A stretch of 64,000 bases of DNA from Pecten maximus (GCF_902652985.1 NC_047020.1:29760001-29824000), one strand, 5' to 3'; shown: positions 5,533-35,618, counted from the stretch's first letter. Notes: generated by a model from the letters alone, not told the origin. A program made the numbers and translations.

Positions 5533-5589
5533 TCTGGTTACCAAAGGCAAATGCACTTGAAGGTAGGCTAGCACTCCTGGCAAAGTTAG
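5533..5589 (-). CDS. MYCBP2: MYCBP2 exon 57 (57 nt, symmetric phase 1)
   Basis: TAG acceptor, GTAAGT donor; ANFARSASLPSSAFAFGNQ. Confidence 0.72.
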
Positions 5590-5910
5590 CTATAACAGAA
5601 AATGGCAGTGGACATGGTTACAGAAATATCTTTTTTCCGGTACTGGTAAAGTTATCTTTTATACAGAAAATGGAATTGTTACAAACCGAAATATCTGTTT
5701 CCCCAATACTGGTAAAATTAACGATAACAGAAAAGGCAGGGGACATGGCTACAGACAGAAATATCTATTTCCCCAATACTCGTAAAATTAACAATAGCAG
5801 AAAATGGCAGGGGACATGGCTACAGAAATATCTATTCTGCGGTACTGGTAAAATTAACAATTACGGCAGTGGACATTGTTACGGAAATAAATTTAGCTAT
5901 AACAAAAAAC
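5575..5910. repeat. Degenerate ~62-bp tandem repeat overlapping the exon 57 acceptor
   Basis: Recurring TACTGGTAAA...ACAGAAAATGGCAG(T/G)GGACATGG(C/T)TACAGAAATATC. Confidence 0.8.
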
Positions 5911-6000
5911 GCATCTAGATTTTCTGTCAAGTCAGTAAAAAGACACCACTGTAAATCTGACTATAAAACACAGACCACAAGACAGGTGTTCTGTACATAC

Positions 6001-6298
6001 CTGGAGAAGGGTGTGTTCCTCCAAACACAGATCCTGGGGTACCAAACACAGAGTACTGAGATGAAGCCTGCGGTGAGGCTCCAAAGTCAAAGCCCTTAGC
6101 AACAGCTGCATTGAGTGTGTTGAAAGAGAAAGGGTCCTTTTCTCCACTTAGGGGTAGTTCAGGGATGTCGGCCTCATGTTGAAGGTACACGATTCCTTCC
6201 TTCCCTGCTACTAAGGACCATGTTTCCCCTTCTTGTTGACAGAACTGTTCTGCACTCTCAGGGTCGATCTTCACCCAAAGCCCATCCTGATTGGTTAC
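6001..6298 (-). CDS. MYCBP2: MYCBP2 exon 56
   Basis: VTNQDGLWV...EGETWSL...YLQHE...GFDFG. Confidence 0.92.
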
Positions 6299-6703
6299 CT
6301 GGGAATGTTAAAGGACATCCTTTTGGTTAACTCATTATTCTATCATATGAGCATATAGCTACAATTTTTTTAATTGGAAAGAAAATGCCTGAAACAGTGA
6401 ATGCATTCTCAGATAGTTTATTTGTCTAATGCATTTATAGGTCCATAATTACCTTTTAGTTCACACTACGTGACTGTCCCTTAGAATTAGTACTGCTTAG
6501 TTCTGTGTAATGAACAGTACTCCATTATGTGTGTCAATTTGTTGATCATATTTATGTTAGTGGCATAAGAGATATACATCAGTCAATAAGAATATTGAAC
6601 ATTCGTCAACATATTGTGATAAGAAAATCCACCGATAGTTCTACTAACAACATAAATATACATAATTGTAAAATGATCAGTATACAATACTCATGTAACT
6701 TAC

Positions 6704-6828
6704 ATCTTCGAGTGCTGTGATTCTATCTCCAAGGGTAAGCATCCCGACTGGTGTGGCTTTGAGACTGGGGCGGCAACGGATATTATGGCCAAATGACCCG
6801 CATTTCAACACCTGGTAAACACCTGGAC
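6704..6828 (-). CDS. MYCBP2: MYCBP2 exon 55
   Basis: GPGVYQVLK...GHNIRCRPSL. Confidence 0.94.
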
Positions 6829-7146
6829 CTAAACAGGCATAAGAAAAATTACTAATGGCAACAATAACTCCATGTCTTAGAGACTTTTCCTAAAATTACA
6901 TAATGATCTCAAAAATGTAAATGATAACGTCCAGAAAATAAAGGTCTTCAGAAAATAATGGTCTTTTTAATTGATGTATATTATTACAGGAGACTACACA
7001 AGAAACTTTTGTGTTTCTTATGAAAGTAACTTATTGTCTTTTTTTTCTTGTTTGATTCCAATGAATAGACTTATTCCTAAATTTGAAGAATTTAAAAAGT
7101 TAATTCCCTAATGTAACCTGACCCAAATTTAAACACTTGAACTTAC

Positions 7147-7375
7147 CCCTCTTAGGCTTGTTAGTCTCTGCTCTGACGAGTTCTGGCAGCTTCTTGAGGA
7201 TGGTCTCTTTAATGATCTCATCCATGAGAGACTTTGGCTCCTCTAATGGTACCAGTAGGGTCTTACCCAGGTGTTGGTTATACTGTAGACACCAGCCCTC
7301 GATATGGCCACTTATACACCAGTCATTTAGTGACTCCTGGCTCAGTCTCAGCCATACACCATCATCATTGTGAAC
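7147..7375 (-). CDS. MYCBP2: MYCBP2 exon 54
   Basis: HNDDGVWLRL...WCLQYNQHLGKTLLVP. Confidence 0.95.
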
Positions 7376-8120
7376 CTGTATCAGTTGGGTTAATATAAAT
7401 CAAGATTAAATTAATTGACAGTAAGTGGATAACATGGGTTAGATCAATGCACAGAGCAAAAGGAATAACATGACAGTACTTCTAATAAATAGTTTTGTGG
7501 CCCAGCAAGGAAAAAGTGTATACAACTTAATACCCGAGTAAATCCATACAATTCTTCTGTATTCAGTCTTGTGGACCCACAGGGATAACATACGGGTTGT
7601 AAATCTTGACAATTCCACTACATAACTGTAACTGTAACCCAATCTCGAGATTTTGATAATTCTATTAGCTAAACTATATGCATGGGAGTTATTTTCGCAT
7701 TAGATGTACATTTTTGTTTTCTTGCACACACATTCCAGAAATACTACCTAAATCTCATAACAATACATGCCGGGAAGATGTTTGCGACTAAATTAACTTT
7801 GCATATTCAGCATAAATTTCTCCTCCATGTGAATTTCCAAGATTACAATATCATAAGTTAGGTGGGTCTGTATATTGTCTATAAGGATACTAGTGGTTAT
7901 TATACATAATGGACCAGGAGTAGTGTTTTGTACAGGGTTTTATACTTTTATTGACCATAACATATCTTTTAACTGGTTTATTGTTTGCCTATGCAATCTT
8001 TCTACATACACAACAGATACAACTTAAACTGACACTTTGATAAAACAGAATGGCACTGCTACACATTTGTAACTTAAACCTTGTGTATATATTATAGTGC
8101 TATATAGATGTCATGTTTAC

Positions 8121-8237
8121 CTCATCAACAAAAGAGATGACACCCTCAGGCTGTATGATTCCCAGCTGTTCACTCTGGAGGGAGGGGTTCACTCGTATCC
8201 TCAGACCTGCACTGTTCTTAGCTACAAATCTACGCAT
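8121..8237 (-). CDS. MYCBP2: MYCBP2 exon 53
   Basis: FVAKNSAGLRIRVNPSLQSEQLG. Confidence 0.95.
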
Positions 8238-8498
8238 CTGAAACATCAAATCAGGATATTATGAAATTCTAGAGGAATATTTGCAATATCATCAACAAGA
8301 TTTTTTTTTTTTTTTGTAAAAGTTTTATAATTACAAGCAAATGACAGCTTTATTGAACTTTGTTGAAACAATCACCGCAAGGCAGGACATGCTGTGATCC
8401 CAAGACTCCTTTCAAATGCAAATTATGCCACGTAGGGATATAATTTATATTGATCCAGTTGATAGTAACAGTAATAAGTATCTGCAGTGTAACATTAC

Positions 8499-8587
8499 CC
8501 GATTCTGTTGGTGCGGCTTTTTCTCGTTCTTGGTTGGTGGAGTCAGCCCCTGGGGAGCCTCCTTCACTTCCACCTTGACCACCTCTC
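8499..8587 (-). CDS. MYCBP2: MYCBP2 exon 52
   Basis: KVEVKEAPQGLTPP. Confidence 0.9.
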
Positions 8588-8863
8588 CTGTAATAAAACA
8601 TTTAAAATCAAGGTACAGCAGCACTGATGATTCCTGCCAGAGATAATCAACTCAACAGTTTTCCTTCCATGATTCTTCATTAATTCTCTATGTAGATTCA
8701 GAACCTATAAACTCACATCAAATTTCTGTGGAAGGTGACATTTCATGATGGTGGCTATGAAAATTATCTAGAAGAGATAAAATGTCCATGAATCATTATC
8801 AAATTAATTAATCTATTATAAGAAGCTAGGGGTCATGTGGCACAAGTTGAAACCTGACAGTAC

Positions 8864-9035
8864 CTGCTTCAAAGCCATCGATAGTGACATGTATATTGTA
8901 GAAGCCGACGCTGCCCGGTGTCCAGTTGGCACTGAAGGTTCCGTCATTGTTTGCTCTGACCAGCATGTTCTCACTAGGACGAAGAACAGCTGGAGCAGCA
9001 AACCTAAGCTCCTCAAATGAGTAGTTCTCATAGGC
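8864..9035 (-). CDS. MYCBP2: MYCBP2 exon 51 (RAE1-binding region)
   Basis: YENYSFEELRFA...RPSENML...ANWTPG. Confidence 0.96.
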
Positions 9036-9330
9036 CTACAGGGAAAACAAAGAGTTTAGATACCCAGACACCTATACACAAATACAATAAAGTGATATAC
9101 TACATTCTAATAGTTATATCCAATTAGAATGCTTCAGTGAATTTGACTATGTTTACAAAATAAAAAATATACAGTGAAAAACGTACATCTGACATTAATA
9201 CAATCCTATGGGAAAACACAGAATGCTTACCGATTCTTATATAGCTGCATTCAATTTGATAAATAGTTTGCATTGAATATAACAATCCATATTGATAAAC
9301 TTTAAGTAGACTATGTTTTTTGCACCATAC

Positions 9331-9519
9331 CTTCATCATACAGATGGCATGGAAGACATCCTTCCTGTCCTTGACTGTAGGTTCATAAGGTGTATCTAGA
9401 CAGGGAGGAGGGTGGCCTCCAAATGTCATATTACCCTCGTCAGGACGACTCAGTCTGCGGACACGTTTCTCATCCTCTCCCAATACACCCATATCGACAG
9501 GTACAGCCTTTACTTCAAC
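9331..9519 (-). CDS. MYCBP2: MYCBP2 exon 50
   Basis: VEVKAVPV...MTFGG...AICMMK. Confidence 0.94.
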
Positions 9520-9634
9520 CTATAAAAGGTGTTCAATATTAAACTGTTACAAAGTAAACCTACTGTTATAGTCCAAATTACTTCTGAGTAATTCAATTTC
9601 ATAATTTAAAAGTGAACTTTCAATATTTCTTTTA

Positions 9635-10640
9635 GTCAGCACTTATCCTGGATTCTAGAACTAAAACCTATTAAGTACAATGCCTTTCGTCTGACATTAC
9701 CGTGGACTCTAGGACTAAAACCAATAGAATAATGAACTTTGGCTTATCTTTATCCTGGACTCTTAGACTCAACCTTGATATGGTATTTTTTGTTTGGTCT
9801 GCCTTTACCTTCAGGTTTTAAACTATTCGTAAGCTTTCATTGGCCTATGGTGTTATCCAGAGCCCCGTTCGATTTGCACTCTTCTAAGAAGAGAAGCCTT
9901 CTAAGAAGATCGTATTCCGTTATATGTAAATCGAGTAAACCGGGAGAATAAAACAAAAAATAAGCAAGTTTTTAAGTTTTCTCAAACACGATGACACAAA
10001 CATGTGCATGTATGTGTTATAAATCCTTCTCTAGTGAAACTCATCACTCGCACACTTAAAACATGGTCGCCGCCATCTTGGAAGATAAATCTTCCAGCTT
10101 CGAGACGGAAGAGGTAGAAGATCTTCCAGAAGCAGAAGAGCTTCAAATCGAGTGACCGGAAGATATATTCTAGAATGAGAAGAGTGCAAATCGAACGGGG
10201 CTCTGGACTATAGACCTGAATCCTAAAGTACTAATTAATTTTGTCTGGCCTTACCTTCAGTTCTGGGACTAAAATCCATTAAATACTAGTATTAACTATT
10301 TGGTCTGGCCTTACCTTGAGATCTGGGACTGCAACCCATTAAATACTAGTATTAATTACTTGGTTGGGACATTCACAGAGTTCTGTGACTGAAACCCATG
10401 AAATAATTATTTGGTCTGACCTTTCACCAAGTTCTGGGTCTGAAAAACTTGATGTATTAATTATTCAGTCTGACCTTACCCTGAGTTCTGGGACTGAAAC
10501 CCATGAAATATTAATTATATGGTCTGGCCTTTCACCCGAGTTTTGAGCCTGAAAGTATTAATCATCTGTCTGACCTTTCACCGAGTTTTGAGCATGTAAG
10601 TATTAATCATCTGCCTGGCCTTACCCTGAGTTCTGGGACA
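9635..10640. repeat. Degenerate ~56-60-bp tandem repeat copied from the exon 49 end and donor, split by a MITE
   Basis: Recurring TCTGGCCTTACCCTGAGTTCTGGGACT. Confidence 0.8.
9856..10207. mobile_element. MITE with perfect 30-bp terminal inverted repeats (PIF/Harbinger-like)
   Basis: TCCAGAGCCCCGTTCGATTTGCACTCTTCT at 9856-9885 and its reverse complement at 10178-10207; CpG-rich; GAAGA subterminal motifs. Confidence 0.85.
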
Positions 10641-10769
10641 TTGACCAGGTGGTTGTACTGATCCTTTGTCAGCACAGTGATGACTGCTGGCCAGCTACAT
10701 TTGAGCTCCTCTTTGTTATAAACAATCTCACACTGTGAAGGGTCGAGGTAAGAGTCGGGCTGGAGCCAC
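10625..10769 (-). CDS. MYCBP2: MYCBP2 exon 49 (filamin-like fold start)
   Basis: WLQPDSYLDP...TKDQY. Confidence 0.95.
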
Positions 10770-11059
10770 CTTCAAATATATTTAGCGTCTCCCCATCATA
10801 AATAAATAGCTAGCTTTTTCAGTAAAAAAAAAACCACGTTGATTTCCAAATTAAAGCTTTTTTTTTTATCTTCATTGTCAGATATGGAAAATCTTGGATA
10901 ATTTTGAACACAAAATTACGTATATCAAATTGTTTATTTGAGATTCATTGAACATATTAAATCATTATCAAAATTAATTAAAAGTAAATATTGGTAAGTT
11001 GTTATCAATTATTCAAATCAGATTCAATTAAGTTCTGAGATCTGTGTCCAAATATGTAC

Positions 11060-11232
11060 CTGGCTAATCGTCCACCACTGGTACCAGGGCTGCATGACAC
11101 AAAGTCTTTGAGGAAGGAACGCTCATTGGACTGCCAGCAGAATGGAAGGTTACCCTCCAGGGCCTGCATGATGGTGGGAGGGTGGGACAGAGCAAAACCC
11201 TTCTCTAACAGTGATGAATGAGCATTGAATAC
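11060..11232 (-). CDS. MYCBP2: MYCBP2 exon 48
   Basis: KGFALSHPPTIMQALEGNLP...GGRLA. Confidence 0.95.
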
Positions 11233-11454
11233 CTGGTGTTATAAAACAACATTCTGAGTACACGTCAGTTAATTTCTTATGTATTCATGTGTCACATATC
11301 AGCTTTCCTTTCTACCTTTGAGTCAGTACCTGTTTCCAGTCTTCATCAAATCTGATTTAATTTTCAATACTATTAGTAGCAAAATGCTATTATTAAATTT
11401 TCAGTAGCAAATGCTTTTTTTATAATAATTACATATCATGCTGTATGTACTTAC

Positions 11455-11510
11455 CAACTGTGTACTTTCATCTATAAAATCCATGTCTTCGTCAAGTTCC
11501 TCCATGGTCA
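11455..11510 (-). CDS. MYCBP2: MYCBP2 exon 47
   Basis: EELDEDMDFIDE. Confidence 0.9.
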
Positions 11511-11742
11511 CTGTAAAACAATGCATACAGTAAGTTAATGACATATTAACATGATTGTTTTAGGTAAGGTATAAGTGAACTTTCAATAGTTAACTTTGAG
11601 AACACATACTTCTACTATAACAGCAAATAGCAATCCACGACATCTTTGCTGATAAAAAAACAAACTGTTAAAGTATTTTATTTGTAGAAATTCTGTGTAA
11701 TACTACTGATAAATTCTTAAGAATGTTTGCTTGCAGACTTAC

Positions 11743-11830
11743 CTGGGGGTAGGCCAATATCCTTTTTGATGAGAGAGCCAGAACACATGCCACCCAGGTA
11801 GGCCAACTCCTGTTCTAACTGTAGAAGGTT
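11743..11830 (-). CDS. MYCBP2: MYCBP2 exon 46
   Basis: QLEQELAYLGGMC. Confidence 0.93.
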
Positions 11831-11844
11831 CTACAAAACAAAAT

Positions 11845-14360
11845 CATAGAGATTGTATCAGACTGTCTTCATATCAGGACAGTGTTAAAACCATGCACAG
11901 AAACTGTATCAGACTGTATTCATATCGGGACAGTGTTAAAACCACAGAGACTGTATCAGGCTGTCTTCATATCAGGTCGATATTAAAACTACAGAGACTG
12001 TATCAGACTGTATTCATATCGGGACAGTGTTAAAACTACAGAGACTGTATCAGACTGTCTTCATATCAGGACGGTGTTAAAACTACAGGGACTGTATCAG
12101 ACTGTCTTCATATCAGGACAGTGTTAAAACTAGAGAGACTGTATCAGACTGTCTTCATATCAGGAAAGTGTTAAAACTACAGAGACTGTATCAGACTGTC
12201 TTCATATCAGGAAAGTGTTAAAACTACAGAGACTGTATCAGGCTGTCTTCATATCAGGTCGATATTAAAACTACAGAGACTGTATCAGACTGTCTTCATA
12301 TCAGGACAGTGTTAAAACCACAGAGATTGTATCAGACTGTCTTCATATCAGGACAGTGTTAAAACCACAGAGATTGTATCAGACTGTCTTCATATCAAGT
12401 CAGTGTTAAAACTACATAGACTGTGTTAGACTGTCTTCATATCAGGACAGTGTTAAAACTACAGAGACTGTATCAGACTGTCTTCATATCAGGACAGTGT
12501 TAAAACTACAGGGACTGTATCAGACTGTCTTCATATCAGGACAGTGTTAAAACTACAGAGACTGTATCAGACTGTCTTCATATCAGGACAGTGTTAAAAC
12601 CACAGAGATTGTATCAGACTGTCTTCATATCAAGTCAGTGTTAAAACTACATAGACTGTGTTAGACTGTCTTCATATCAGGACAGTGTTAAAACCACAGA
12701 GATTGTATCAGACTGTCTTCATATCAAGTCAGTGTTAAAACTACATAGACTGTGTTAGACTGTCTTCATATCAGGACAGTGTTAAAACTACAGAGACTGT
12801 ATCAGACTGTCTTCATATCAGGACAGTGTTAAAACTACAGAGACTGTATCAGACTGTCTTCATATCAGGACAGTGTTAAAACTATAGAGACTGTATCAGA
12901 CTGTCTTCATATCAGGACAGTGTTAAAACTATAGAGACTGTATCAGACTGTCTTCATATCAGGACAGTGTTAAAACTACAGAGAATGTATCAGACTGTCT
13001 TCATATCAGGACAGTGTTAATACTACAGAGACTGTATCAGACTGTCCTCATATCAGGACAGTGTTAAAACTATAGAGACTGTATCAGACTGTCTTCATAT
13101 CAGGACAGTGTTAAAACTATAGAGACTGTATCAGACTGTCTTCATATCAGGACAGTGTTAAAACCACAGAGACTGTATCAGACTGTCTTCATATCAGGAC
13201 AGTGTTAAAACTATAGAGACTGAATCAGGCTGTCTTCATATCAGGACAGTGTTAAAACCACAGAGACTGTATCAGACTGTCTTCATATCAGGACAGTGTT
13301 AAAACTACAGAGACTGTATCAGACTGTCTTCATATCAGGACAGTGTTAAAACTACAGAGACTGTATCAGACTGTCTTCATATCAGGACAGTGTTAAAACT
13401 ACAGAGAACGTATCAGACTGTCTTCATATCAGGACAGTGTTAAAACTACAGAGACTGTATCAGACTGTCTTCATATCAGGACAGTGTTAAAACTACAGAG
13501 AACGTATCAGACTGTCTTCATATCAGGTCGATATTAAAACTACAGAGACTGTATCAGACTGTCCTCATATCAGGACAGTGTTAAAACTACAGGGACTGTA
13601 TCAGACTGTCTTCATATCAGGAGAGTGTTAAAACCACAGAGACTGTATCAGATTGTCTTCATATCAGGTCAATATTAAAACTACATAGACTGTATCAGAC
13701 TGTCTTCATATCAAGTCAGTGTTAAAACCACAGAGACTGTATCAGATTGTCTTCATATCAGGACAGTGTTAAAACTATAGAGACTGAATCAGACTGTCTT
13801 CATATCAGGACAGTGTTAAAACCACAGAGACTGTATCAGACTGTCTTCATATCAGGACAGTGTTAAAACTACAGAGACTGTATCAAACTGTCTTCATATC
13901 AGGACAGTGTTAAAACCACAGAGACTGTATCAGACTGTCTTCATATCAAGTCAGTGTTAAAACTACAGAGACTGTATCAAACTGTCTTCATATCAGGACA
14001 GTGTTAAAACTACATAGACTGTATCAGACTGTCTTCATATCAGGACAGTGTTAAAACTACAGAGACTGTATCAGGCTGTCTTTATGTCAGGGCAGTTTAG
14101 TTTATTTTGTTTAACATTACCATTTACAGCCATGGTCATTTAAGGATGTGTCGCGTTTTGGAGGTGGAGGAAAACCAGAGTACCCAGAGAAAAAACACCG
14201 GCCTATGGTCAGTACCAGGCAACTGCCCCATGTGGGTTTTGAACTCCCAACCCAGAGGTGGAGTGCTAGTGATAAAGTGTCGTGACATCTTAATCACTCG
14301 GCCCCTATGTTAACACAACAAAGACTGTATCAGGCTGTCTTTATGTCAGGATAATGTTAA
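11845..14360. repeat. 47-bp minisatellite, ~48 copies, filling intron 45
   Basis: Unit ACTACAGAGACTGTATCAGACTGTCTTCATATCAGGACAGTGTTAAA. Confidence 0.97.
14096..14306 (-). mobile_element. tRNA-derived SINE inserted in a terminal unit of the 47-bp array
   Basis: A-box-like GGCCGAGTGATTAAG, B-box-like GAGTTCAAAACCC, core GGGTACTCTGGTTTTCCTCCAC, A-rich tail. Confidence 0.8.
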
Positions 14361-14597
14361 ACCCTTGTAATACTGGTATGTAGCCAATTGTGTATAAAGC
14401 AGTTCTTAAGGGGGAAAATTGAACTTGCAGTACAGCAACAAAACCAAGAAAGTTCTCATTTTCTAAATGCATTAGGGAATTTATCTTTCATGAGAATTGT
14501 TCTTAGAGACCATAGGACCACAGTTGGTTTTGTTTACCTCAACAAAATGATACCGATCAATATATTGTATTTTATGAAGAAAATAAGAGAATATTAC

Positions 14598-14716
14598 CTC
14601 TAAAGGTTTGGAATTCCACTCGTATCCAACAATGCAGCATTTGAAGCCGTAGAAACAAGACTTCTCATCTTTGATGTAATCTGATGCAGTCTCTAGTGAA
14701 AATACTACTTCACTAC
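14598..14716 (-). CDS. MYCBP2: MYCBP2 exon 45
   Basis: FSLETASDYIKDEK...YGFKC. Confidence 0.95.
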
Positions 14717-15118
14717 CTGCAAACAAATTTTGAATAGACTTTTTTACCTCAGTAATACTGTTTCAACAACAGCTTCATAAATTAAGTTCTTGCTTCATCA
14801 TTTCGGAAACAAATAGGAATAGTTACATTTACATAATATCATTAATCATACTTATTGCATAAACATAATTTTGTGAATTCATATTCGAAAACCACATACC
14901 AATGACATTTATTCAAGTTTTATTTGGCCTGTATGTCTACTGTTCTACAAGAAAAAATGATTACATAATATCACTTTGAGTAAATGCACATGCCATTGAA
15001 CAAATGATTGTAAGCACCAGAACTACACAAACAAGATTTACTGTGCAATTAGTTAACAGGAAAAAAAATCTAATGGTACAGTACTAGAATTAATTTATCA
15101 TCATATTAATTAACTTAC

Positions 15119-15353
15119 CAGGAAGAATGATTGCATTCTTAGGCCAGTTGTCTGCCCCTGAGAATTTTTTTCGGAGGGGACTATAGTTCTGCTTGTTGGG
15201 CAGATCCTCAATTTCCTTGGTAACACTGGAAGTGATGCTAGTGGTGTTGATGATGCTAGGAATCAACAGCTGAAGTGTGTCCTCAGCCTGGGCTGTACCA
15301 CAGAGGGGGTCAAACTCCAGCACCATCCACTTGACAGACTCAGGGAACATGAC
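15119..15353 (-). CDS. MYCBP2: MYCBP2 exon 44
   Basis: FPESVKWMVLEFDPLCGTAQAED. Confidence 0.95.
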
Positions 15354-15776
15354 CTTAAATTACATGATATTATTGATAAATAATCAGTGATTTGCTAAGT
15401 TTGTACACAACAACACAGTAACCTGATCCTTTTAATTTTATAAATCTCATCTCCTTTGAAATCATGTTCTTGTAGAAAAAACAAATAACTAAGTCTTATT
15501 CAATGACATATTCTTTTATCATTAATTATACATGACTTCGGACATGACAAGCTTGTTGACCAAAGAAGACAAACAACTAAAACCAAAGATTGAATTGAAA
15601 TTGGCCGTTTATTTATTAAACGACAATTGAAATAAACTTGCAATACAAGTTGATATTCATAAAATCAACCATATGAATCGAACTTTGGTCCAAGGTGATT
15701 GTGCTAAATAATCTATTCTAGTAAGTGTTATTCATCTCCATTAAACATAGTGTTCTCGTAGTTCAAACAAACGTAC

Positions 15777-15965
15777 CTTGTAGTTAGCTACGGTAGCTGG
15801 TTTATAGGGATGGTCACTCTCCACCACGGCATAGTGATGTGAAGTTGTGCCCCCGTTGTTCTCTGTGCTCCCATCAGGGGAGGGCTGGGGCTGGGTAACT
15901 TTACTGTTGATACAAGTGAGGGCAGGCAAAATCTCCTGTATCATACCCAGCACTTGTACTGCCCC
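15777..15965 (-). CDS. MYCBP2: MYCBP2 exon 43
   Basis: HYAVVESDHPYKPA. Confidence 0.95.
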
Positions 15966-16169
15966 CTACAAATACAACACATGTATCGGTAAAGAAGTCA
16001 GTTTTTTCATCATGCTTTAATTTAAACGGGTACCTTTTAGTTCAAACCAAACTTGTCTAAAAATGACAGAACCAAGCTAAAAACCCTTACAGACAGGAAC
16101 TTAATTGTCAGCACAGAAACAATAGACAATCCTACCAGAGTACCTTAAGACAGGTGACCACATACTCAC

Positions 16170-16270
16170 CCGGGGGTCTTGAGAGGCTACAGGTCCAATA
16201 TACGCCAAAATGAGTGGCAGCAGAGAACAGAATAGATGGGAGTTTCCTAGGATTGATAATGATTCTTCCA
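16170..16270 (-). CDS. MYCBP2: MYCBP2 exon 42
   Basis: LLPLILAYIGPVA. Confidence 0.94.
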
Positions 16271-24569: not shown

Positions 24570-24774
24570 CTGTCCAAAAAATGGCACTTTATATTTCTAT
24601 TTACAAACAACACAAGGGACATAAATTTTCTTTGAAATGCTTTGCATTTGGAACTGATTAAAATTTGTCTTTAGTATGAACTACATAAAAGATGATCACT
24701 GTACAAGATGCATTGGCAAAGAAATTTTGGAAGACTCAATATGGGCACTGCTGACTGACTAGTCGAGGACTTAC

Positions 24775-24906
24775 CGATACAAGATGTATTGGCGAAGACT
24801 TTTGAGGAGGCTAGGATATGTGCATTGATGAGCGACTCGTCAATCCTCATATAAGTCTGATCTCCACTGGCATGTATCCATGTTGCACGTCGACCATACC
24901 TGGCAC
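24775..24906 (-). CDS. MYCBP2: MYCBP2 exon 24
   Basis: YGRRATWIHASGDQTYMRIDESLIN. Confidence 0.95.
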
Positions 24907-25386
24907 CTGAGAAAAGGAGAATATGCACTGAATATGGCAAAAAATATTAACACAAAGTACAGCATTGTCTCCCCTAGAATGATTTCCTTCTGAGGGCAAT
25001 GCCAGTAAAATATCTTCCCCACCCAAGGACTCTAGTTTTGTTAAGGGGTACCACCAAAGAATTTATTAAGTAAATTACATTGAAGTAATACGAAGGTAAT
25101 CCATCCATGGATACAAGCGATTTCTTTTGGAGTCCTGGGGTCAGGTAGATATTTTGATGGAATAGCCCTGATACTTTTCAAGTAATCCAATTTTTTTTTC
25201 ATTCATTCAGTCAAAATATAAAGTTTAATATTACAACAATATCTATTTGTTGTTATTTGAAACCTTAACATCTATAACTAAGATACTGTTTAAATGAAGT
25301 AGTATGTTGTTGCAAATACGTACCTTGCATAAAAATAAATTTATGCACTATACATGTATTAGGATACTATCCTATGTCTTACTCAC

Positions 25387-25480
25387 CAATGCCAGGAACT
25401 GGCCCAGGGAGGGCGTACCACAGACCCTTCTTTGTCTTGGCTCCAGCCTCATCAGGGCCTGCTCTACCAAGGGCACCTTT
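25387..25480 (-). CDS. MYCBP2: MYCBP2 exon 23
   Basis: KGALGR...WYALPGPVPGI. Confidence 0.9.
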
Positions 25481-25660
25481 CTGTACACATAATCATTGAA
25501 TAATGAAGTTACTAGATTTTTCACTATTTAAAATAATCAGATCACAGAATTACTAACTATACAACAGTGAAATAGTTTCATTTAACTGCATTTATATTAT
25601 TTCAAATTTGACATGTTTAATCAAATTTTTAATCTTAATTGTATGAATCTAAAAATTTAC

Positions 25661-25775
25661 CTGGAAATTTCCAAAGGTGTAAACTTGACCGTTGGAGAGC
25701 AAGACAACAGAGTGGTGGGCTCCTGTGGCCACCTGAATGGCGCTCAGTGGCAGGTGGACCTTTGTTGGTGTTCCT
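25661..25775 (-). CDS. MYCBP2: MYCBP2 exon 22 (RCC1 repeat)
   Basis: QVATGAHHSVVLLSNGQVYTFG. Confidence 0.94.
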
Positions 25776-25799
25776 CTGTGTAAATAAGGTGTCATTAGA

Positions 25800-25980
25800 A
25801 AATGTGAAATGTATACACCTGGTACAGTAAATGGATGCTGTGTGGGTGAAATGTATACATCAGGTAAATGAATGCTGTGTGGGTTAAATGTATACACTAG
25901 GTAAATCAACGCTGTGTGGTGAAAAATATACATTGGGTAAAGGGCGCTGTGTGGGTGAAATGTATACACTAAGTAAATAA
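25800..25980. repeat. Degenerate ~36-bp repeat, ~5 copies, next to the exon 22 acceptor
   Basis: Recurring GCTGTGTGGGTGAAATGTATACAC...GGTAAAT. Confidence 0.75.
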
Positions 25981-26127
25981 CTTTATAGTGAGGTGACGTG
26001 CACAAATTCACTAAAAGGACACTTAGTATCACTGAATAAACAAATCACATTCAAACTGTAAAATGTTCTCTTTTCTTGATCCAGATTTTAAAAAGAACAC
26101 TCTTAACTTTGTAGCAGGAACATTACA

Positions 26128-26532
26128 ATGATAAATGTAACTTACCTGACTGTTAGGTCCCCCTGGCCTAACTGTCCATACTGGTTACTACCAAATGATA
26201 AATGTAACTTACCTGACTGTTAGGTCCCCCTGGCCTAACTGTCCATACTGGTTACTACCAAATGATAAATGTAACTTACCTGACTGTTAGGTCCCCCTGG
26301 CCTAACTGTCCATACTGGTTACTACCAAATGATAAATGTAACTTACCTGACTGTTAGGTCCCCCTGGCCTAACTGTCCGTACTGGTTACTACCAAATGAT
26401 AGATGTAACTTACCTGACTGTTAGGTCCCCCTGGCCTAACTGTCCGTACTGGTTACTACCAAATGATATATGTAACTTACCTGACTGTTAGGTCCCCCTG
26501 GCCTAACTGTCCATACTGGTTACTACCAAATG
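26128..26532. repeat. 67-bp tandem repeat, 6 copies = last 52 nt of exon 21 + first 15 nt of intron
   Basis: Donor CAG|GTAAGT after positions 26481, 26414, 26347, 26280, 26213, 26146. Confidence 0.97.
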
Positions 26533-26562
26533 CGTAAACCTCCCCAGACTGAAGCAACACGA
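26481..26562 (-). CDS. MYCBP2: MYCBP2 exon 21 (RCC1 repeat)
   Basis: GEVYAFGSNQYGQLGQGD. Confidence 0.94.
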
Positions 26563-27133
26563 CTGAAATAAATGACAACAACATCTGTAGGTCAAGTTAC
26601 AACAATCATAGATTAATAAGTAGCATCAATTATTGATAATACCAGTGGCCTGTTTGTTTATGTGGATAAACCGGTTCATCAATTTTGAATTGTAACATTT
26701 CAGGCATAAATCTTGACGGACCTGCAGATATAAAGAAAGGACTTGAAAGTCTTTGTCAAGGCTTGTCCAAAAGTAACACAAAACTACTAGGCCTGTCATT
26801 ATTCCATAAATAAATTACTATGGTCCAACCGTTTGTACTGCAATAAATGAAAACAGCCCAGGAAGGAGACTAAGAGATGATTGCTAATTTAGCCAAATCC
26901 TTGGAAGGTATTTCAATACAAAAATGATTCTTAAATTATGCATGTTTCAAATGTTTGAGATTATTGGCACAGTGAGAGCATAATTATAAACATATTAATG
27001 AATTTTTAACACATTATTTGACTCACAATGTGTTAGCAATCATAATTCAATACAATTTACTTATTATATATATACTAAAATAACATTAGGACATTATACA
27101 GAATGTGATAAACTAGGTATCCTTGGTATTTAC

Positions 27134-27256
27134 CTGTGTGATGTTGACCACAGGATATCTGAGTGACAGGTACATCCCCGTCCCCCACGGTCACCTCTAA
27201 TGGCGGTAGACTGACCACCTTGTTATACTCAGTCTCCTGGTCACTTCCAACTTCAG
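27134..27256 (-). CDS. MYCBP2: MYCBP2 exon 20
   Basis: VTQISCGQHHT. Confidence 0.93.
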
Positions 27257-27358
27257 CTGTTGATAAGTACACGAAAATGATTTTAGGTGTCTTTCTTTAC
27301 GATAATCACAATCCAATTAATAAAACAATCAATTATCTAAGTTAGAGTAATAACTTAC

Positions 27359-27478
27359 GCTGTGCTTTTCCTTTCTGTTTACTTCCTGATTTAGATCCAG
27401 ATCGATGGTGTTGTCTGACAGGTCGTTCTAGGAGCCGCTTAAAGAACTGCTCTAATGGGGTACCATGGTTACGACCAC
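27359..27478 (-). CDS. MYCBP2: MYCBP2 exon 19
   Basis: Open phase-1 exon with canonical sites (GRNHGTPLEQFFKRLLE...). Confidence 0.82.
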
Positions 27479-27599
27479 CTGAAATGTATATAACTCAATC
27501 AACACTGCCTCCCAAAGTCAACAAATACCCTAAACTTACTTTTTCATCTGCTTCTGTCTAATGACTACTGTACAGAACCTTCCTAAACAAAATAAGTGC

Positions 27600-29335
27600 T
27601 ACCTTTGTCAGTAACACTTGAGATAATGTCAATGTTTACCTTTAGGTCCTACCTTTGTCAGTAACACTTGAGATAATGTCAATGTTTACCATAAGGTCCT
27701 AATTTGTCAGTATTACCTGAGATAATGTCAATGTTTACCTTTAGGTCCTACCTTTGTCAGTAACACCTGAGATAATGTCAATGTTTACCTTTAGGTCCTA
27801 CCTTTGTCAGTATTACCTGAGATAATGTCAATGTCTACCTTTAGGTCCTACCTTTGTCAGTAACACCTGAAATAATGTCAATGTTTACCATTAGGTCCTA
27901 CCTTTGTCAGTAACACCTGAGATAATGTCAATGTTTACCTTTAGGTCCTACCTTTGTCAGTAACACCTGAGATAATGTCAATGTTTACCTTTAGGTCCTA
28001 CCTTTGTCAGTAACACCTGAGATAATGTCAATGTTTACCTTTAGGTCCTACCTTTGTCAGTAACACCTGAGATAATGTCAATGTTTACCATTAGGTCCTA
28101 CCTTTGTCAGTAACACCTGAGATAATGTCAATGTTTACCTTTAGGTCCTACCTTTGTCAGTAACACCTGAGATAATGTGTCCTACCTTTGTCAGTAACAC
28201 TTGAGATAATGTCAATGTTTACCATAAGGTCCTACCTTTGTCAGTAACACCTGAGATAATGTCAATGTTTACCTTTAGGTCCTACCTTTGTCAGTAACAT
28301 CTGAGATAATGTCAATGTTTACCATTAGGTCCTACCTTTGTCAGTAACACCTGAGATAATGTCAATGTTTACCTTTAGGTCCTACCTTTGTCAGTAACAC
28401 CTGAGATAACATCAATGTTTACCATTAGGTCCTACCTTTGTCTGTGACACCTGAGATAATGTCAATGTTTACCTTTAGGTCCTACCATTGTCAGTAACAC
28501 CTGAGATAATGTCAATGTCTACCTTTAGGTCCTACCATTGTCAGTAACACCTGAGATAATGTCAATGTTTACCATTAGGTCCTACCTTTGTCAGTAACAC
28601 CTGAGATAATGTCAATGTTTACCTTTAGGTCCTACCTTTGTCAGTAACACCTGAGATAATGTCAATGTCTACCTTTAGGTCCTACCTTTGTCAGTAACAC
28701 TTGAGATAACATCAATGTCTACCTTTAGGTCCTACCTTTGTCAGTAACACCTGAGATAATGTCAATGTCTACCTTTAGGTCCTACCTTTGTCAGTAACAC
28801 CTGAGATAATGTCAATGTTTACCTTTAAGTCCTACCTTTGTCAATAACACCTGAGATAATGTCAATGTTTACCTTTAGGTCCTACCTTTGTCAGTAACAC
28901 CTGAGATTATGTCAATGTTTACCTTTAGGTCCTACCTTTGTCAGTAACACCTGAGATAATGTCAATGTTTACCTTTAGGTCCTACCTTTGTCAGTAACAC
29001 CTGAGATAATGTCAATGTTTACCTTTAGGTCCTACCTTTGTCAGTAACACCTGAGATAATGTCAATGTTTACCTTTAGGTCCTACCTTTGTCAGTAATAT
29101 CTGAGATAATGTCAATGTTTACCTTTAGGTCCTACCTTTGTCAGTAACACCTGAGATAATGTCAATGTTTACCTTTAGGTCCTACCTTTGTCAGTAACAC
29201 CTGAGATAATGTCAATGTTTACCATTAGGTCCTACCTTTGTCAGTAACACCTGAGATAATGTCAATGTTTACCATTAGGTCCTACCTTTGTCAGTAACAC
29301 CTGATATAATGTCAATGTTTACCTTTAGGTCCTAC
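27600..29335. repeat. 50-bp minisatellite, ~35 copies, starting at the exon 18 donor
   Basis: Unit CCTACCTTTGTCAGTAACACCTGAGATAATGTCAATGTTTACCTTTAGGT. Confidence 0.97.
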
Positions 29336-29480
29336 AAGGAGGTCAAACTGTGCCAGGTCTTTGTTCTTTGTGAGGACATGAGCAAGCTGTTGGGCTTCAT
29401 CCATACTCTGTTCAGCAGCACACATCTTACAGATCCCACATTCACTGCAACCCGAGTCTCCAGACCCACACCCACATGGC
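29323..29480 (-). CDS. MYCBP2: MYCBP2 exon 18 (Cys-rich)
   Basis: CGCGSGDSGCSECGICKMCA; donor AAG|GTAAAC. Confidence 0.92.
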
Positions 29481-29715
29481 CTGTACAACATTTAATATAG
29501 GGGTCCATCAAACTTAGACGATCTAATTATAATGTCATTTTTTGGTTTAACGAACTCAAGATTTTTTTCCTTTAACAGAAATTGTTTTGCAATCATCTTG
29601 GAATGAAAATGGTTCCTCGTCTGGCAATCCAGAACAAGTGCACATATGAATTGTGTGAATATATGAGGTAAGACCATAAGAAATCATGATAAGAAAGAAA
29701 ATACATTGCACTTAC

Positions 29716-29827
29716 ATGCCTGGGTTTCTGCCTCCCTGTACAGAGTGAACACAAGCTATACCATACCCTGTACACTCCCCACACACAGAGCATACCATAC
29801 AGTGGTCAGTCTTCCATTTGTGTCGAC
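29716..29827 (-). CDS. MYCBP2: MYCBP2 exon 17 (Cys-rich)
   Basis: HKWKTDHCMVCSVCGECTGYG. Confidence 0.94.
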
Positions 29828-30119
29828 CTGAAACATCAGATTTACAAGCGATTTGATGTAATTATCTACAGCTTAGTACCTAGATTACTTACAAAATTTA
29901 CTTTTTTGTTTGTTCTACAGGGAGAAGAGATTTTGATTAATTACAAGCCAACATTTTTATCCTAGCATTAAACTTTTTATTGACCCCCATAATATTGTAA
30001 AAAAGCCTAGAACATTTTCATCCTAGCATTGAACTCTTAATCTGCCTCCATATAATATTGTACAAATTCCAGAAATAATTCAAGACAGTGATCTGAGAGA
30101 CTATAGTCAAGATTAATAC

Positions 30120-30188
30120 CTGCACCACAAATGGCCTCCTCCTGCTCTGTCTCCTCCTCTTCTTCGGTCATTGTTACGTTGTTACTGG
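30120..30188 (-). CDS. MYCBP2: MYCBP2 exon 16 (acidic)
   Basis: MTEEEEETEQEEAICGA. Confidence 0.87.
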
Positions 30189-30422
30189 CTGTCAAGTAAA
30201 GATTAGGTAGACAACTCTCATGTAGAGAAAAGACAAGTGTGTTAGCATGTTTAGAAGTTTTTGATATTATGTTAAGGATCAATCTTCATTTAAATTTACT
30301 GTTTATCTTAATCACTTGCATGACAAAAGGCCAATTCTCAAAAGGATGTTCTTTGAGAGGAAAAATACTGGTATATTTTGTAAACATGTACATGACATTG
30401 TACAGTGTGTGGTCAAACAAAC

Positions 30423-30578
30423 CTTCCTTTGAGCCACCAGGCTGAAAGTCGCGGCCACATTGGCCCTTGTTGTTTATTCCGAAGCTGTAAATGAAGCCCT
30501 TGTTGGTGAGAACTATGGCATGGGCCTTCCCAAGGCAGATGTTGGTCACAACTACGTCCTTCAAGTCTGTCACATGAC
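30423..30578 (-). CDS. MYCBP2: MYCBP2 exon 15 (RCC1-like)
   Basis: GKAHAIVL...FGINNKGQCGRD. Confidence 0.95.
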
Positions 30579-31029
30579 CTTCAAACAAAAGTTAAATTAT
30601 TCAGTATGCAACTTATAGTGACATCTTAATCTCATGATTCAGAAATACTACCCGCATATCAAATCTGAAGTTTACATTTAACAGTACATGGAACAGTGGC
30701 CATATAAATGTATATATTATATGGAAGCCTAATGATGTGTCACCCTTTTTCATAATGTATCTGTTTACAACATTTGATGAGTAATGGTCACATATTAACT
30801 AATTGGAAGGAAAATTAAATATTATGCTATAGTATGCTTTCAACTTTTTTCAAAAAGCAGTTATACATTTAGCTTTGTCAAAATGAACAATTGTCTAGTC
30901 AGATCACAATATCAAAATTCTTCAAACAATCTTATGCTGACGACTTAATTTGATATTTTTAATCATCAGTCTGTTTTATGAACACTTTATAAGTTTTGTT
31001 TCGTTCATGACATTATTACTAAGACTTAC

Positions 31030-31197
31030 CACTAGCATGATCACAGTAAGAGGAATCCTTGCCAAACATGAACACCTCGCCTTCCTTGGTAACGAACGCA
31101 CTGCTACCATTGTTACAAGCAGCTTGTATCACAGTCTTTGATTCAAATCGAACCAGCTTCTTTGGTTTCACTGCTTTTGGTTGGCGTCTTCCTTTCG
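31030..31197 (-). CDS. MYCBP2: MYCBP2 exon 14 (RCC1-like)
   Basis: ACNNGSSAFVTKEGEVFMFGKD. Confidence 0.95.
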
Positions 31198-31656
31198 CTG
31201 TCAAATGATAAAAAAGTAAACATTTCAAATTTCTACCAGTTGAGTAGTATTTCTAAAACTAATCATAAACAAGTACATGACTGTATCAAGTGATTAAATC
31301 CCTTCTGTGTGTAAGTTTGTCTCAGAGCAGAGTTATATCTTAAAACAGAGTCAAGGAAATACTTTCTTTCATTGATTTCATATCTCTAAATTCTCATATA
31401 TGTTGGTAATAATGAGAAGTATTATCTTAATGATGTTCAGTTAAACTATGTGTTTCAGACATATCAAGAATTTAATACAACACTGAACTTCTAGCAATTA
31501 ACATTTTTAACACTGAGAGCTCTGTTTAATTAAGTACAAAGCCAATTCAGATTATAGAGAGCCCAAGTGCATTAAAACATATCACATATTGAATAAGAAG
31601 AAAGCAAGGCGATGGGGAAGACTGCCATATCTTCATTCTATTGCCACTTCACTTAC

Positions 31657-31867
31657 ACATGCTAGTATCCCCATCCTCTCCACGACGAGGTGTCCCCACG
31701 AAGAACAGACTACCGTCCTCAGACACAATCAGGGCATGCTGGCCTTCATGTCCTGTGGCGACCTGTACAATCTTGGGTGACTTTGTGATAGGTAGCTCTG
31801 CCCATTTACCCTGAGCAGGTGCTCCCTGTTTGATGCCCAGGGACTGGGACTTTCCACTGTATAACAC
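31657..31867 (-). CDS. MYCBP2: MYCBP2 exon 13 (RCC1-like domain)
   Basis: GKWAELPITKSPKIVQVATGHEGQHAL. Confidence 0.95.
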
Positions 31868-32165
31868 CTGTGATATATAGTGTATATGCTTAATTTGCCT
31901 CCAATATAAATGTTTCAGGCGTCTAGCCATACTAATAGAAATTAATCAAATACGCTGGTATTCTATATTATAAACCATAGCCATACTAATTGAAATTAAT
32001 CAAATACACTGATATTCTATACCATAAATCAATCAATGTTAGGTTTACCTAAAAAAATCAACTAAACACATTTCAACACAATTATCATAATCAAAATTTT
32101 AGTCAGTTCCATCAGAGAAACTTTATAAACTGGTCACAGAGTAATTCTTTGTGTCACAATATTAC

Positions 32166-32242
32166 CTTTCCACCCACAGTTCTGATCAGTACAAAGTCTT
32201 TAGCTCCAGTGATGGCTACGGAATCTTCATCATAGGCAGTAT
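32166..32242 (-). CDS. MYCBP2: MYCBP2 exon 12
   Basis: TGAKDFVLIRTVGGK. Confidence 0.88.
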
Positions 32243-32571
32243 CTGGAAATTACACAGTTCAATAGAAATAATGTTTTCTGCTGTTGATATTGGGTCAGGG
32301 TTATTCCAGTAAAATATATATTCTACAGGAAGACTACAAGAAAGAAGAAGAAAAGAGAAAGTAACTCTATGCATGGTAGTTAAATATGGCTTATTAATTT
32401 CTTCAGTTGGTGGTACATTTTAGTGCTTATTTCTTTTAAGTGCTGTGCGTGTAATTAAAGTTTTTGTATTTTTTTTTCGGGTTTTGTTTCATTTCTGGTA
32501 ACAAACACTGATCTATCTCTTGAGCAAACTTCATACCAAATAGATTACTGTACATCTAATACAACACATAC

Positions 32572-32716
32572 TGATTGAGTGCCTCTCTGTTGTTTGGTCG
32601 TAGGAGGCTGTCCCAAACACATCCATACACTTGCGAGTGAGTTTGAGGGGCAGTTCTCCCGCCACAGTCATGGGACTGACATCAGGGTTGTACAGGCGCA
32701 CCACAAAGCTGTCTTG
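32572..32716 (-). CDS. MYCBP2: MYCBP2 exon 11
   Basis: DSFVVRLY...ELPLKLTRKC. Confidence 0.9.
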
Positions 32717-32994
32717 CTGTGGACAGGATATCATACATATCTAACCATTATACATTTATTGTTTTGTTCACAATATCAATGTCAGATTTTAACCAATTCT
32801 TAAGTTTAATAGAGAAGAGGGAAAAATTAATACAATAGGTAGAGACAGTTGTTGTAGAAATTCATGCCTACTCCGTAATATCATGAAAACTATATCAGAT
32901 ATAAACTTTCCAAAATTCAACCAAAAATGAATTATATTATCCATGATTTATTTACCAGAAAAAATCTCTTTGTGGAGTCATGTGATGTACTTAC

Positions 32995-33065
32995 ATCTTT
33001 AGCAGCTGCAATCTGTCCGATGTTTTCTCCATCACTAAACAAAGCGCTGGGCCCCGGGCCTTTAC
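32995..33065 (-). CDS. MYCBP2: MYCBP2 exon 10
   Basis: LFSDGENIGQIAAAKD. Confidence 0.9.
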
Positions 33066-33326
33066 CTAGCAAAACACACAAAATAAGTATGTTGGGACTG
33101 AAACACATTTTTGTGACACAAACAACATAATGGACTATTCCAACTATATCCATAGCGTTTGGAATCACTCAGCTAATTGGGAGTTCATTGTTCTACTATA
33201 ATCATTTCACTATTTTGTAGCCTACAAAGACTATCGGGTAAAAAGGAACATAATCATATCTATCTATAACGATAACCTATTATCAACTATACATTCTACA
33301 TCCATGGTTCTGACTGTTTGACCTAC

Positions 33327-33423
33327 CATCCAGTTTACAGGAGTTCATTACTGTCAGGTCTTCTTTATTAATGGTACACAGACAGGGTTGAGCATTCTCG
33401 TCCGACCGACAAAACAGCTGATC
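33327..33423 (-). CDS. MYCBP2: MYCBP2 exon 9
   Basis: DQLFCRSDENAQPCLCTINKEDL; phases fit. Confidence 0.85.
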
Positions 33424-33571
33424 CTATGTGAGATGAATGAAAAAAAAATTATAATCACACTTTAGTGTTTTTAACAAATTATTTTTATCATTTGGTAAGA
33501 AAATTTTCAGGATATTTATTATATATCATCAACTTATTTATGATAATGTGTTGTAATGAGCAAAAACTTAC

Positions 33572-33637
33572 CTTTGCACAAGCAAGCCATACAGATGAGG
33601 TTGATACAGTAAATTCTTTCTGTAGATAAATGTGTCC
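33572..33637 (-). CDS. MYCBP2: MYCBP2 exon 8
   Basis: GHIYLQK...WLACAK. Confidence 0.88.
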
Positions 33638-33784
33638 CTGAAAAATGCAAAAAATAATGCATGTTTCATCTTTTCCGCTTTGACAGTATGGTAAGTTTTA
33701 AGTATCTACCGAACGAATTATATGACACTTAATGAAATGTAAATTTTAGTTATTTCACAACAAGCATGAAACAAGTAATATCAA

Positions 33785-33960
33785 CTTATATTCATCACTC
33801 TTGTTGGCCAAGATAGAAGCTCGCAAGGGGTTTTATTGTGGGAGAAAACCCATGTGGTTGAGCAGGTGACCCCATACCTTTTCATGTCTGATCGGGGAAT
33901 CAAACCCTCGCCGTCTAGGTGAAAGGCAACTGTGTTACCACTGTGCCACCCAACCACCCT
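33785..33960 (-). mobile_element. tRNA-derived SINE (internally shortened)
   Basis: A box TGGCACAGTGG, B-box-like GGTTTGATTCCC, GGGTTTTCTCC core. Confidence 0.75.
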
Positions 33961-34708
33961 CAAATAATGATTTATTAATTAATATTAGCTTTGGATACAT
34001 CACGTATAGACACCACAAAAGATTACAACTTGTCATGCAAATCACAAGCCAATTGACTACAAAGGATTCCTCTTAAAGATTGTTATGCAGCTTTGGTAAA
34101 TTAAAGATTTTCATTGTCTTATGCTGGAGTATTTAGTTACATCCCAATTTTTTTCTCTCTGAAAATGCAACTTAAAAACGTACCTGTGCACTATACACAA
34201 GTGTGCACTATATGCACGAATTTAGGATATTTCTTAAAATTCAAATACTTATTAATATGAAAGTTTCACCTAAAATATCACTTTATAGAAAGTGAGAAGA
34301 AAATACATTTGTCTGATTCTAGTCCAGTTTTCCAGTATCCCTAATTTGCAGAGTACCTTGACAATAGTCTGGATGTTGAATGAGTTGGGATGATGAGTTA
34401 GTTTGGATTGTCACTGCATATGTGATCAAACTAGATACACAATGTAGCAAGTTCGGTTAAGTTCGACTACCCAGTAATCAGCTTTGAGCTGCAAAAGTGT
34501 GATGTTGATACTGACTCCACTGCCAGAAAAGTAACATCATGGTAAAACTTTTCGTCGCAGGTGAGACAAATTTAAACAATTAATCAGCATAAATAACATT
34601 ACATAATAAACTTATTAAAATGTGAAATATTGAAATGATATTGAGTTGTCCTCCTAAATACATCCATCAATATAAGAAATGTTAACCTGTAACGTAGATG
34701 AGAATTAC

Positions 34709-34812
34709 CTTAGTTGTGTCTCCATAACCTGTTCCCACTTTGGCTATTCCGTTTTTGTTGTCCAGTATGTACAAATATCTGCCATCAGATGCTACAGCAC
34801 AATCTATTCCAC
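34709..34812 (-). CDS. MYCBP2: MYCBP2 exon 7
   Basis: SDGRYLYIL...KVGTGYGDTTK. Confidence 0.9.
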
Positions 34813-34892
34813 CTACAAGGAACAATAACCAATGTTTATAAACACAATAATATGTGTAGGATATACAGCATAGTAAAACTCAATCTGTAGTT

Positions 34893-35475
34893 TAACCTCT
34901 CCTGTTGTACCAATTATAGCATGACCTTCTCACCTGTTGTATGTAATACTCTGACCTTCTCACCTGTTGTATGTAATACTCTGACCTTCTCACCTGTTGT
35001 ATGTAATACTCTGACCTTCTCACCTGTTGTATGTAATATTCTGACCTTCTCACCTGTTGTATGTCATACTTTGACCTTCTCACCTGTTGTATGTAATACT
35101 CTGACTGTCTCACCTGTTGTATGTCATACTTTGACCTTCTTATCTTTTGCATGTAATATTCTGACCTTCTCACCTGTTGTATGTAATATTCTGACCTCAC
35201 CTGTTGTATGTAATATTCTGACCTTCTCACCTGTTGTATGTAATACTCTGACCTTCTCACCAGTTGTATGTAATATTCTGACCTCACCTGTTGTATGTAA
35301 TAATCTGACCTTCTCACCTGTTGTATGTAATACTCTGACCTTCTCACCTGTTGTATGTAATACTCTGACCTCACCTGTAGTATGTATTAATTTGACCTTT
35401 TCACCTGTTGTATGTAATACTTTGACCTTTTCACCTGTTGTATGTATCCATACTTTAATAAACTCACCTGCTGTA
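34893..35475. repeat. 30-bp (some 27-bp) minisatellite, ~19 copies, starting at the exon 6 donor
   Basis: Unit CTGACCTTCTCACCTGTTGTATGTAATACT. Confidence 0.96.
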
Positions 35476-35618
35476 TCATTTGTGTGAAGTTTCTCTAGTG
35501 TAAACGTGTCGATCAGGCCTCCAGACTTTACCCCCTGGTTAAACCAGTCAGGTAGCTGGGTCTTCCCTAATAATACAGCCTGGACACTCTTCTGTAACGA
35601 GGTTAGTATGCCTGGCAC
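35468..35618 (-). CDS. MYCBP2: MYCBP2 exon 6
   Basis: VPGILTSLQKSVQAVLLGKTQLPDWF; donor CAG|GTGAGT. Confidence 0.92.

Follow-up and report, generated by a model that had tools for sequence, protein, structure and literature searches.

Within a 64,000-nucleotide window of the king scallop genome (Pecten maximus; NC_047020.1:29760001-29824000), a gene of the MYCBP2/Highwire/RPM-1 type carries intronic tandem arrays that very probably belong to the junction-spanning minisatellites typified by the amphioxus "mirages" and by human F7 intron 7. Four of these arrays repeat an exon end together with its 5′ splice site, and one repeats a 3′ splice site. Across the whole genome, 5′ splice sites exceed matched words about ten-fold or more in how often they head tandem arrays, and this excess is not a by-product of chance. 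Its cause can be stated more tentatively: one far-reaching reading is that functional 5′ splice sites in this species are hot spots of minisatellite birth, through mutation coupled to transcription or splicing and not through selection or the word alone, and we give it about one chance in three (0.35).

Donor-spanning arrays and the splice sites in use

Four mutually unrelated arrays, with units of 30, 50, 67 and ~58 bp, copy the adjacent donor in every unit (Table 1). An earlier note made from the sequence had reported them, and both Tandem Repeats Finder (TRF) and a reading of the minus strand recover them where it had placed them. It had them starting exactly at the 5′ splice site, which is incorrect; they begin within the exon, 9-49 nt before its end. 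Its lengths for the four donor units stand, and the ~62 bp that it gave for an acceptor unit becomes about 70 bp. The range of ages that it described, from near-perfect to decayed, is matched by TRF unit identities that run from 98% down to 71%. By sequence comparison the five junction units (four donor, one acceptor) are unrelated to one another, and the 67-bp array sequence occurs at a single place in the whole genome; together, these two observations indicate local and independent origins.

The donor copies that follow the real donor would differ in their effect on the message if they were used. Units of the 30-bp array end in ..ACAACAG/GTGAG and supply 17 pseudo-donors, the first ten of which are in frame and stop-free; the unit has the computed translation GEKVRVLHTT, and the unit-length variants seen (27, 30 and 33 nt) are multiples of three. 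The 50-bp array holds 33 pseudo-donors, the 67-bp array holds five that are identical to the real donor, and three remain recognisable in the decayed ~58-bp array. In these last three arrays the use of any copy would, by computation, lead to a premature stop.

The key joints are seen in assembled RNA contigs from a single study (two runs), which cover two of the five junction arrays, those with 67-bp and 50-bp units. At the 67-bp array, a 2.8-kb contig contains the joints 25775/26481 and 26562/27134, which leave an exon of 82 nt, free of additional units, and set the ends of exons 26481-26562 and 25661-25775. At the 50-bp array, a contig passes beyond 27480 into the unique body of exon 29323-29480 and its first donor, so joining that donor to exon 27359-27480; the 30 nt of the loose end have a single place in the window (29325). 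All joints found are ordinary exon-to-exon joints, none of which begins or ends within an array, and no joint to a pseudo-donor is seen in the contigs at either array, although rare use may escape contigs. The ladders of competing splice sites that the earlier note envisaged do not appear here, since the contigs use the exon-proximal donor at both arrays and join no copy. The roles that it proposed for them, in tuning exon length, triggering nonsense-mediated decay (NMD), acting as U1 decoys or giving rise to new exons, are not supported so far. Nothing unusual is implied for MYCBP2 itself, from which a normal mRNA is made.

The claim that one array duplicates an acceptor is confirmed at exon 5533-5589. 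The AG has been lost from the internal copies at 5857 and 5721, as well as from those at ~5790 and ~5655 when these are read by eye, and the outermost copy (5896) retains it. Such losses fit selection against competing upstream acceptors.

Genome-wide excess of donor-word arrays and its possible causes

The excess at donors was measured without annotation, by counting, throughout the assembly (918,306,378 bp in 3,983 pieces, the longest of 60,076,705 bp), the places where a 9-mer recurs in three spaced copies. With a spacing of 15-45, the consensus donor CAGGTAAGT gives 4,834 matches, as against 39-543 for five control words of the same composition or with a single "dead" base. Among these controls are the reverse of the donor word, TGAATGGAC (279 matches), a permuted word, GATGCAGTA (39 matches, about 15 arrays genome-wide), its reversed form, ATGACGTAG (543 matches), and a dead variant, CAGGAAAGT (423 matches, with one giant array; 5 arrays in the first ~160 Mb). 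The imbalance persists at a spacing of 46-76 (3,737 for CAGGTAAGT vs 115 for its reverse), with the 10-mer CAGGTAAGTG (656 vs 8 reversed) and with AAGGTRAGT (3,318 vs 302 reversed). As a single copy, CAGGTAAGT exceeds its reverse just 3.4-fold (22,640 vs 6,606). In the first 24 Mb of C1 the donor word marks at least 15 distinct arrays, no two of which share a unit, and genome-wide the density of donor-word arrays is about 20-40 times that of control-word arrays. We estimate several hundred arrays per roughly 9,000 real consensus donors, such that ~5% of donors head an array vs ~0.3% of control sites.

The corresponding test of an acceptor word, TTTTTCAGG, gives 27 places with three spaced copies genome-wide vs 43 for the reversed word and thus no excess. 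This result speaks weakly against an acceptor bias, coming as it does from one low-information word. The proposal that a process repeatedly seeds arrays at exon junctions is therefore supported for donors, by the genome-wide word excess, and not for junctions in general.

Chance overlap would offer the simplest account of the arrays at junctions, as in a minisatellite-saturated genome with short introns some arrays would straddle junctions without any bias and persist there as harmless sequence. The setting favours such overlap: minisatellite coverage is 13.8% in the window and reaches 41.9% in a 200-kb block (C1:10000001-10200000, with 70 arrays, one of which has 26-bp units and is 11 kb long), and with a median collapsed intron of 300 bp some 7-16% of random seeds would straddle a donor. 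When ten arrays are seeded uniformly on the 54-exon model of the gene, 1.27 are expected to straddle a donor and four do (P(≥4) = 0.028), and for arrays at any junction P(≥5) = 0.08. Given the short introns, and a gene chosen with the pattern already in view, this within-gene excess is weak when taken alone and only suggestive. Two findings oppose chance. Donor-word arrays exceed all five control words more than ten-fold, far beyond the 3.4-fold difference in the frequency of the word itself. In addition, a plus-strand locus chosen by donor word alone for one array, C1:4556637-4560947, proves to have two of its three other arrays anchored at donors too. Within 4.3 kb this locus has four exons with canonical sites and one 106-amino-acid frame; its three donor-anchored arrays have units of 44, 39 and 59 bp, the fourth array is internal with 19-bp units, and a Pfam search with two of the exons gave no match. 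We regard it as very unlikely that chance overlap explains the pattern.

A second possibility is an effect of the DNA motif itself, in which CAGGTAAGT or a near word would act as an amplification-promoting minisatellite core wherever it occurs, with splicing irrelevant. The exact word does appear to be needed, as a T-to-A change at +2 abolishes the excess; one word-selected array seemingly has no exon anchor on the sense strand; and roughly 40% of single word copies are, by estimate, chance occurrences. Against this, the donors of the anchored arrays are diverse and several lie far from consensus (AAG/GTAAAC, AGG/GTAAGG, CAG/GTGTGT and CAG/GTGAGT), no 6-mer core is shared among 82 arrays, and the unit phase begins 7-49 nt inside the exon, not at the motif. 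An effect of the motif alone is thus, in our judgement, quite unlikely. A universal minisatellite core was considered as a separate candidate and rejected, as no 6-mer is strongly shared among the 82 arrays and the apparent recurrence of AATACTAGT is not enriched.

The arrays probably arose through tandem duplication, at the DNA level, of a 30-70-bp segment lying across the exon-intron boundary, followed by amplification of the duplicate through slippage or unequal exchange. With a boundary-straddling segment as the starting point, every unit would carry an exon end and a splice site. The spliceosome would then pick the copy contiguous with the exon body, as it does at the two arrays covered by RNA, leaving the other copies as plain intron; the chosen copy would be the first donor or, in the acceptor array, the last acceptor. 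If sites are chosen upstream first, by analogy with F7, extra donors would be harmless and extra upstream acceptors harmful, from which both the bias towards donors over acceptors and the mutated AGs of the acceptor array would follow. Slippage between pre-existing direct repeats is not supported as the initiating step, since at the 50 array-free donors of the gene 9-mers resembling the donor are not in excess between +15 and +90 (5.76 vs 5.77 identities).

Selection offers a third explanation of the bias, one in which arrays are retained for a function: recruitment of U1, with suppression of premature polyadenylation or definition of the exon, NMD-coupled dosage, or in-frame insertions. A ten-fold excess does require either mutational bias or selection, and the 30-bp array, with its ten consecutive in-frame, stop-free pseudo-donors and unit lengths in multiples of three, is a further point in its favour. 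The genome is also AT-rich, and we assume cryptic poly(A) signals to be plentiful in introns of this kind. However, pseudo-donors are unused in every transcript contig, the 50-, 67- and 58-bp arrays all lead to premature stops, and the copies decay with age as unconstrained sequence would. Published mirage and F7 cases are likewise reported to be splicing-neutral (PMC1557585, PMC3087553, PMC3902484). Retention for a function is therefore unlikely in our view and, with low confidence, we lean less to selective retention than to a bias in duplication, linked to transcription or splicing, as the cause of the donor bias. A candidate process would begin with polymerase pausing, or with breakage linked to R-loops, where exon and intron meet, and would continue with template switching.

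Several observations weigh against the account of junction-spanning arrays with a genome-wide donor excess. Within the gene the excess is about 3-5 fold with P = 0.03, and the genome-wide array counts are extrapolated from the matches listed. Exon anchoring was read at two word-selected loci, one of them clear and the other unclear or antisense: at C1:5116064-5119513 no clear sense-strand exon precedes the array, which is antisense to the sole evident gene, so that consensus-word arrays are not all junction-derived. When the 82 arrays of 264 kb of unselected sequence (the window and the 200-kb block) are scored for donor-likeness by position weight matrix (PWM), 13 pass a weak threshold vs 8.6 expected, and at the median threshold there is 1 vs 2.3 expected. 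Among nine donor-like arrays of the block, no exon anchoring was convincing on inspection. Minisatellites as a class thus lack donor enrichment, which also favours chance overlap; most are not donor-derived, junction arrays are a small minority, and the bias exists per donor, not per array. Finally, the RNA contigs, coming from two runs and covering two of the five arrays, may miss rare isoforms.

The host gene and other features of the window

The window is AT-rich animal DNA, dense in minisatellites (44 TRF rows) and free of N stretches; the Pecten maximus genome paper nowhere mentions tandem repeats or minisatellites (PMC7191990). The gene was modelled by a dynamic program over splice sites and codons with the tandem arrays masked, giving a median exon of 134 nt and a median intron of 337 nt. 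Pfam queries were made with single exons, joined translations serving for checks of frame continuity only, and they return two PHR domains, an RCC1-like domain and a Filamin repeat, the architecture of MYCBP2/Highwire. RNA contigs from four runs confirm 12 listed intron junctions of the gene between 21982 and 27480, and led to one modelled exon being redrawn to 23849-24024.

Table 1. Coordinates of the gene, its array-bearing exons and its tandem arrays, counted from the first letter of the window.
Feature	Position	Strand	Basis and details
MYCBP2/Highwire/RPM-1-type gene (part)	4846..37132	minus	own splice/codon dynamic-programming model, 54 exons
Exon heading the 30-bp array, donor CAG/GTGAGT	35468..35618	minus	sequence reading and exon model
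30-bp minisatellite	34922..35467	minus	17.8 units by TRF (about 18), 89% alike; exon part about 9 nt
Exon heading the 50-bp array, donor AAG/GTAAAC	29323..29480	minus	exon model; donor end set by RNA loose end
50-bp minisatellite	27599..29335	minus	35 units, 93-96% alike; unit is 13 last exon nt and 37 intron nt
RCC1-repeat exon, 82 nt, ending ..FGSNQYGQLGQGDLTV, donor CAG/GTAAGT	26481..26562	minus	RNA joints on both sides
67-bp minisatellite	26127..26529	minus	6 units (TRF 6.1), 98% alike; unit is 49 last exon nt and 18 intron nt
Exon heading the ~58-bp array, donor AGG/GTAAGG	10625..10769	minus	exon model and sequence reading
Decayed ~58-bp array	10238..10639	minus	~54-60-bp units, about 8 copies, 71-88% alike; ~15 exon nt
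Exon, 57 nt, acceptor and first ~13 nt repeated upstream	5533..5589	minus	exon model and sequence reading
Acceptor-spanning array	5577..5915	minus	~66-70-bp units, about 6 copies (TRF 70 x 2.6); real acceptor in the last copy
47-bp x 48 intronic array	11848..14096	minus	ends upstream of the exon 11743-11809 acceptor, 38 nt away; no junction copy
37-bp x 4 array	25826..25978	minus	ends 50 nt upstream of RNA-verified acceptor 25775; no clear junction copy
58-bp x 7 internal intronic array	16919..17324	minus	95 nt from donor; ordinary-minisatellite comparison
Further internal arrays	29950-30066; 31924-32028		within the gene

Two arrays that had been described as abutting acceptors, those with 47-bp and 37-bp units, stop 38 and 50 nt upstream of them and are not acceptor copies. 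A stretch of ~230 bp at 14100-14330 on the minus strand reads as a short interspersed element (SINE) derived from a tRNA and lying inside the 47-bp array. A partial 47-bp unit is present beyond it, at ~14330-14375, and this unit on the far side of the putative SINE would make the array older than the insertion.

A simple gene finder run without masking called array units as exons of 15-30 nt. Each unit of the 50-bp array (27599-29335) contains a 15-nt piece (GVTDK) flanked by AG and GT, which the gene finder takes as an in-frame micro-exon, and these pieces are likely a trap for automatic annotation. In introns of the gene at 24924-25301 and 26625-26813, summed contig depth is very high and loose ends are many in all four RNA runs, which probably reflects dispersed repeats expressed elsewhere. 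Elsewhere in the window, long open frames occupy the minus strand at 54867-62000, and the arrays at 57765-58060 (17-bp units) and 61837-62096 have units with no donor motif.

Comparison with known junction-spanning arrays and wider meaning

The features that define the mirages and F7 intron 7 (IVS7) recur in the scallop gene. The kind is defined by intronic head-to-tail arrays of three or more units of about 10-160 bp, and these arrays have about 6 to 35 units of 30 to about 70 bp. Their terminal monomers span the boundary and take in about 9, 13, 49 and 15 exon nt at the donors and about 13 at the acceptor. The exon-proximal site is the one used in assembled RNA contigs at the 67-bp and 50-bp arrays. 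Each unit comes from its host junction, as the 67-bp sequence has a single genomic place and the others hold their host exon's own end.

Tandem duplication within genes has reportedly also given rise to introns and splice sites (the Rogers model; Hellsten 2011; Zhuo 2007; Gao and Lynch 2009). The scallop arrays share with such intron gain the in-gene tandem duplication of an AG/GT-bearing segment, and with it potential raw material for exon-intron structures. They differ in that the duplicated signals there are used and yield a new intron, whereas here the intron was there beforehand and the contigs show no spliced copy. Intron creation by tandem duplication was accordingly rejected as a description of these arrays, as every RNA joint found in the contigs is an ordinary one and none lies inside an array. 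Introner-like or transposon-borne splice sites were rejected as well, as the 67-bp unit has a single genomic place and the donor-word arrays all have different units.

If the donor excess is real, what were previously curiosities of a few human and a few lancelet genes become many natural experiments on 5′ splice-site choice, with identical donors placed in series, some in frame and some with premature stops, and the question of their origin becomes a genome-wide statistical test. It would also be a warning to annotators, since arrays may inflate or distort bivalve gene models. Should donors truly be hot spots, they would form a splice-site-directed source of structural mutation, offering thousands of natural F7-like cases in which to follow donor choice and the birth of exon-intron boundaries.

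The closest counterparts are the mirages of amphioxus, minisatellite-like tandem duplications of exon-intron boundaries in Adh3, troponin C, the globins BflGb6/9 and PGBD5 (PMC3087553; PMC3902484). In the amphioxus lineage the authors consider the phenomenon "possibly general", by a mechanism that they describe as "unclear" (PMC3087553; PMC3902484). Somatic and allelic instability has been shown for Adh3. Both systems have boundary-spanning units of tens of bp that reiterate GT or AG, at 5′ as well as 3′ boundaries, and a normal mRNA. The scallop differs in belonging to another phylum, as a bivalve mollusc, and in its donor-biased genome-wide excess over control words; a search of the open literature yielded no comparable measurement for amphioxus. 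[quoted passage not shown] At F7 the most upstream donor alone is used, by 5′-to-3′ scanning, and IFI6 and CBS also use their first two pseudo-sites (PMC1557585). The human and scallop arrays alike have a first monomer made of the last exon nucleotides and the donor, with identical pseudo-donors behind it, and the scallop 67-bp and 50-bp arrays behave like F7. The human VNTRs are, in contrast, isolated cases, and pseudo-site use of the IFI6/CBS type is not seen in the scallop contigs, whose depth is low. As such, the scallop arrays represent a known junction-spanning kind that is new for a mollusc, to which the genome-wide excess at donors is the added element.

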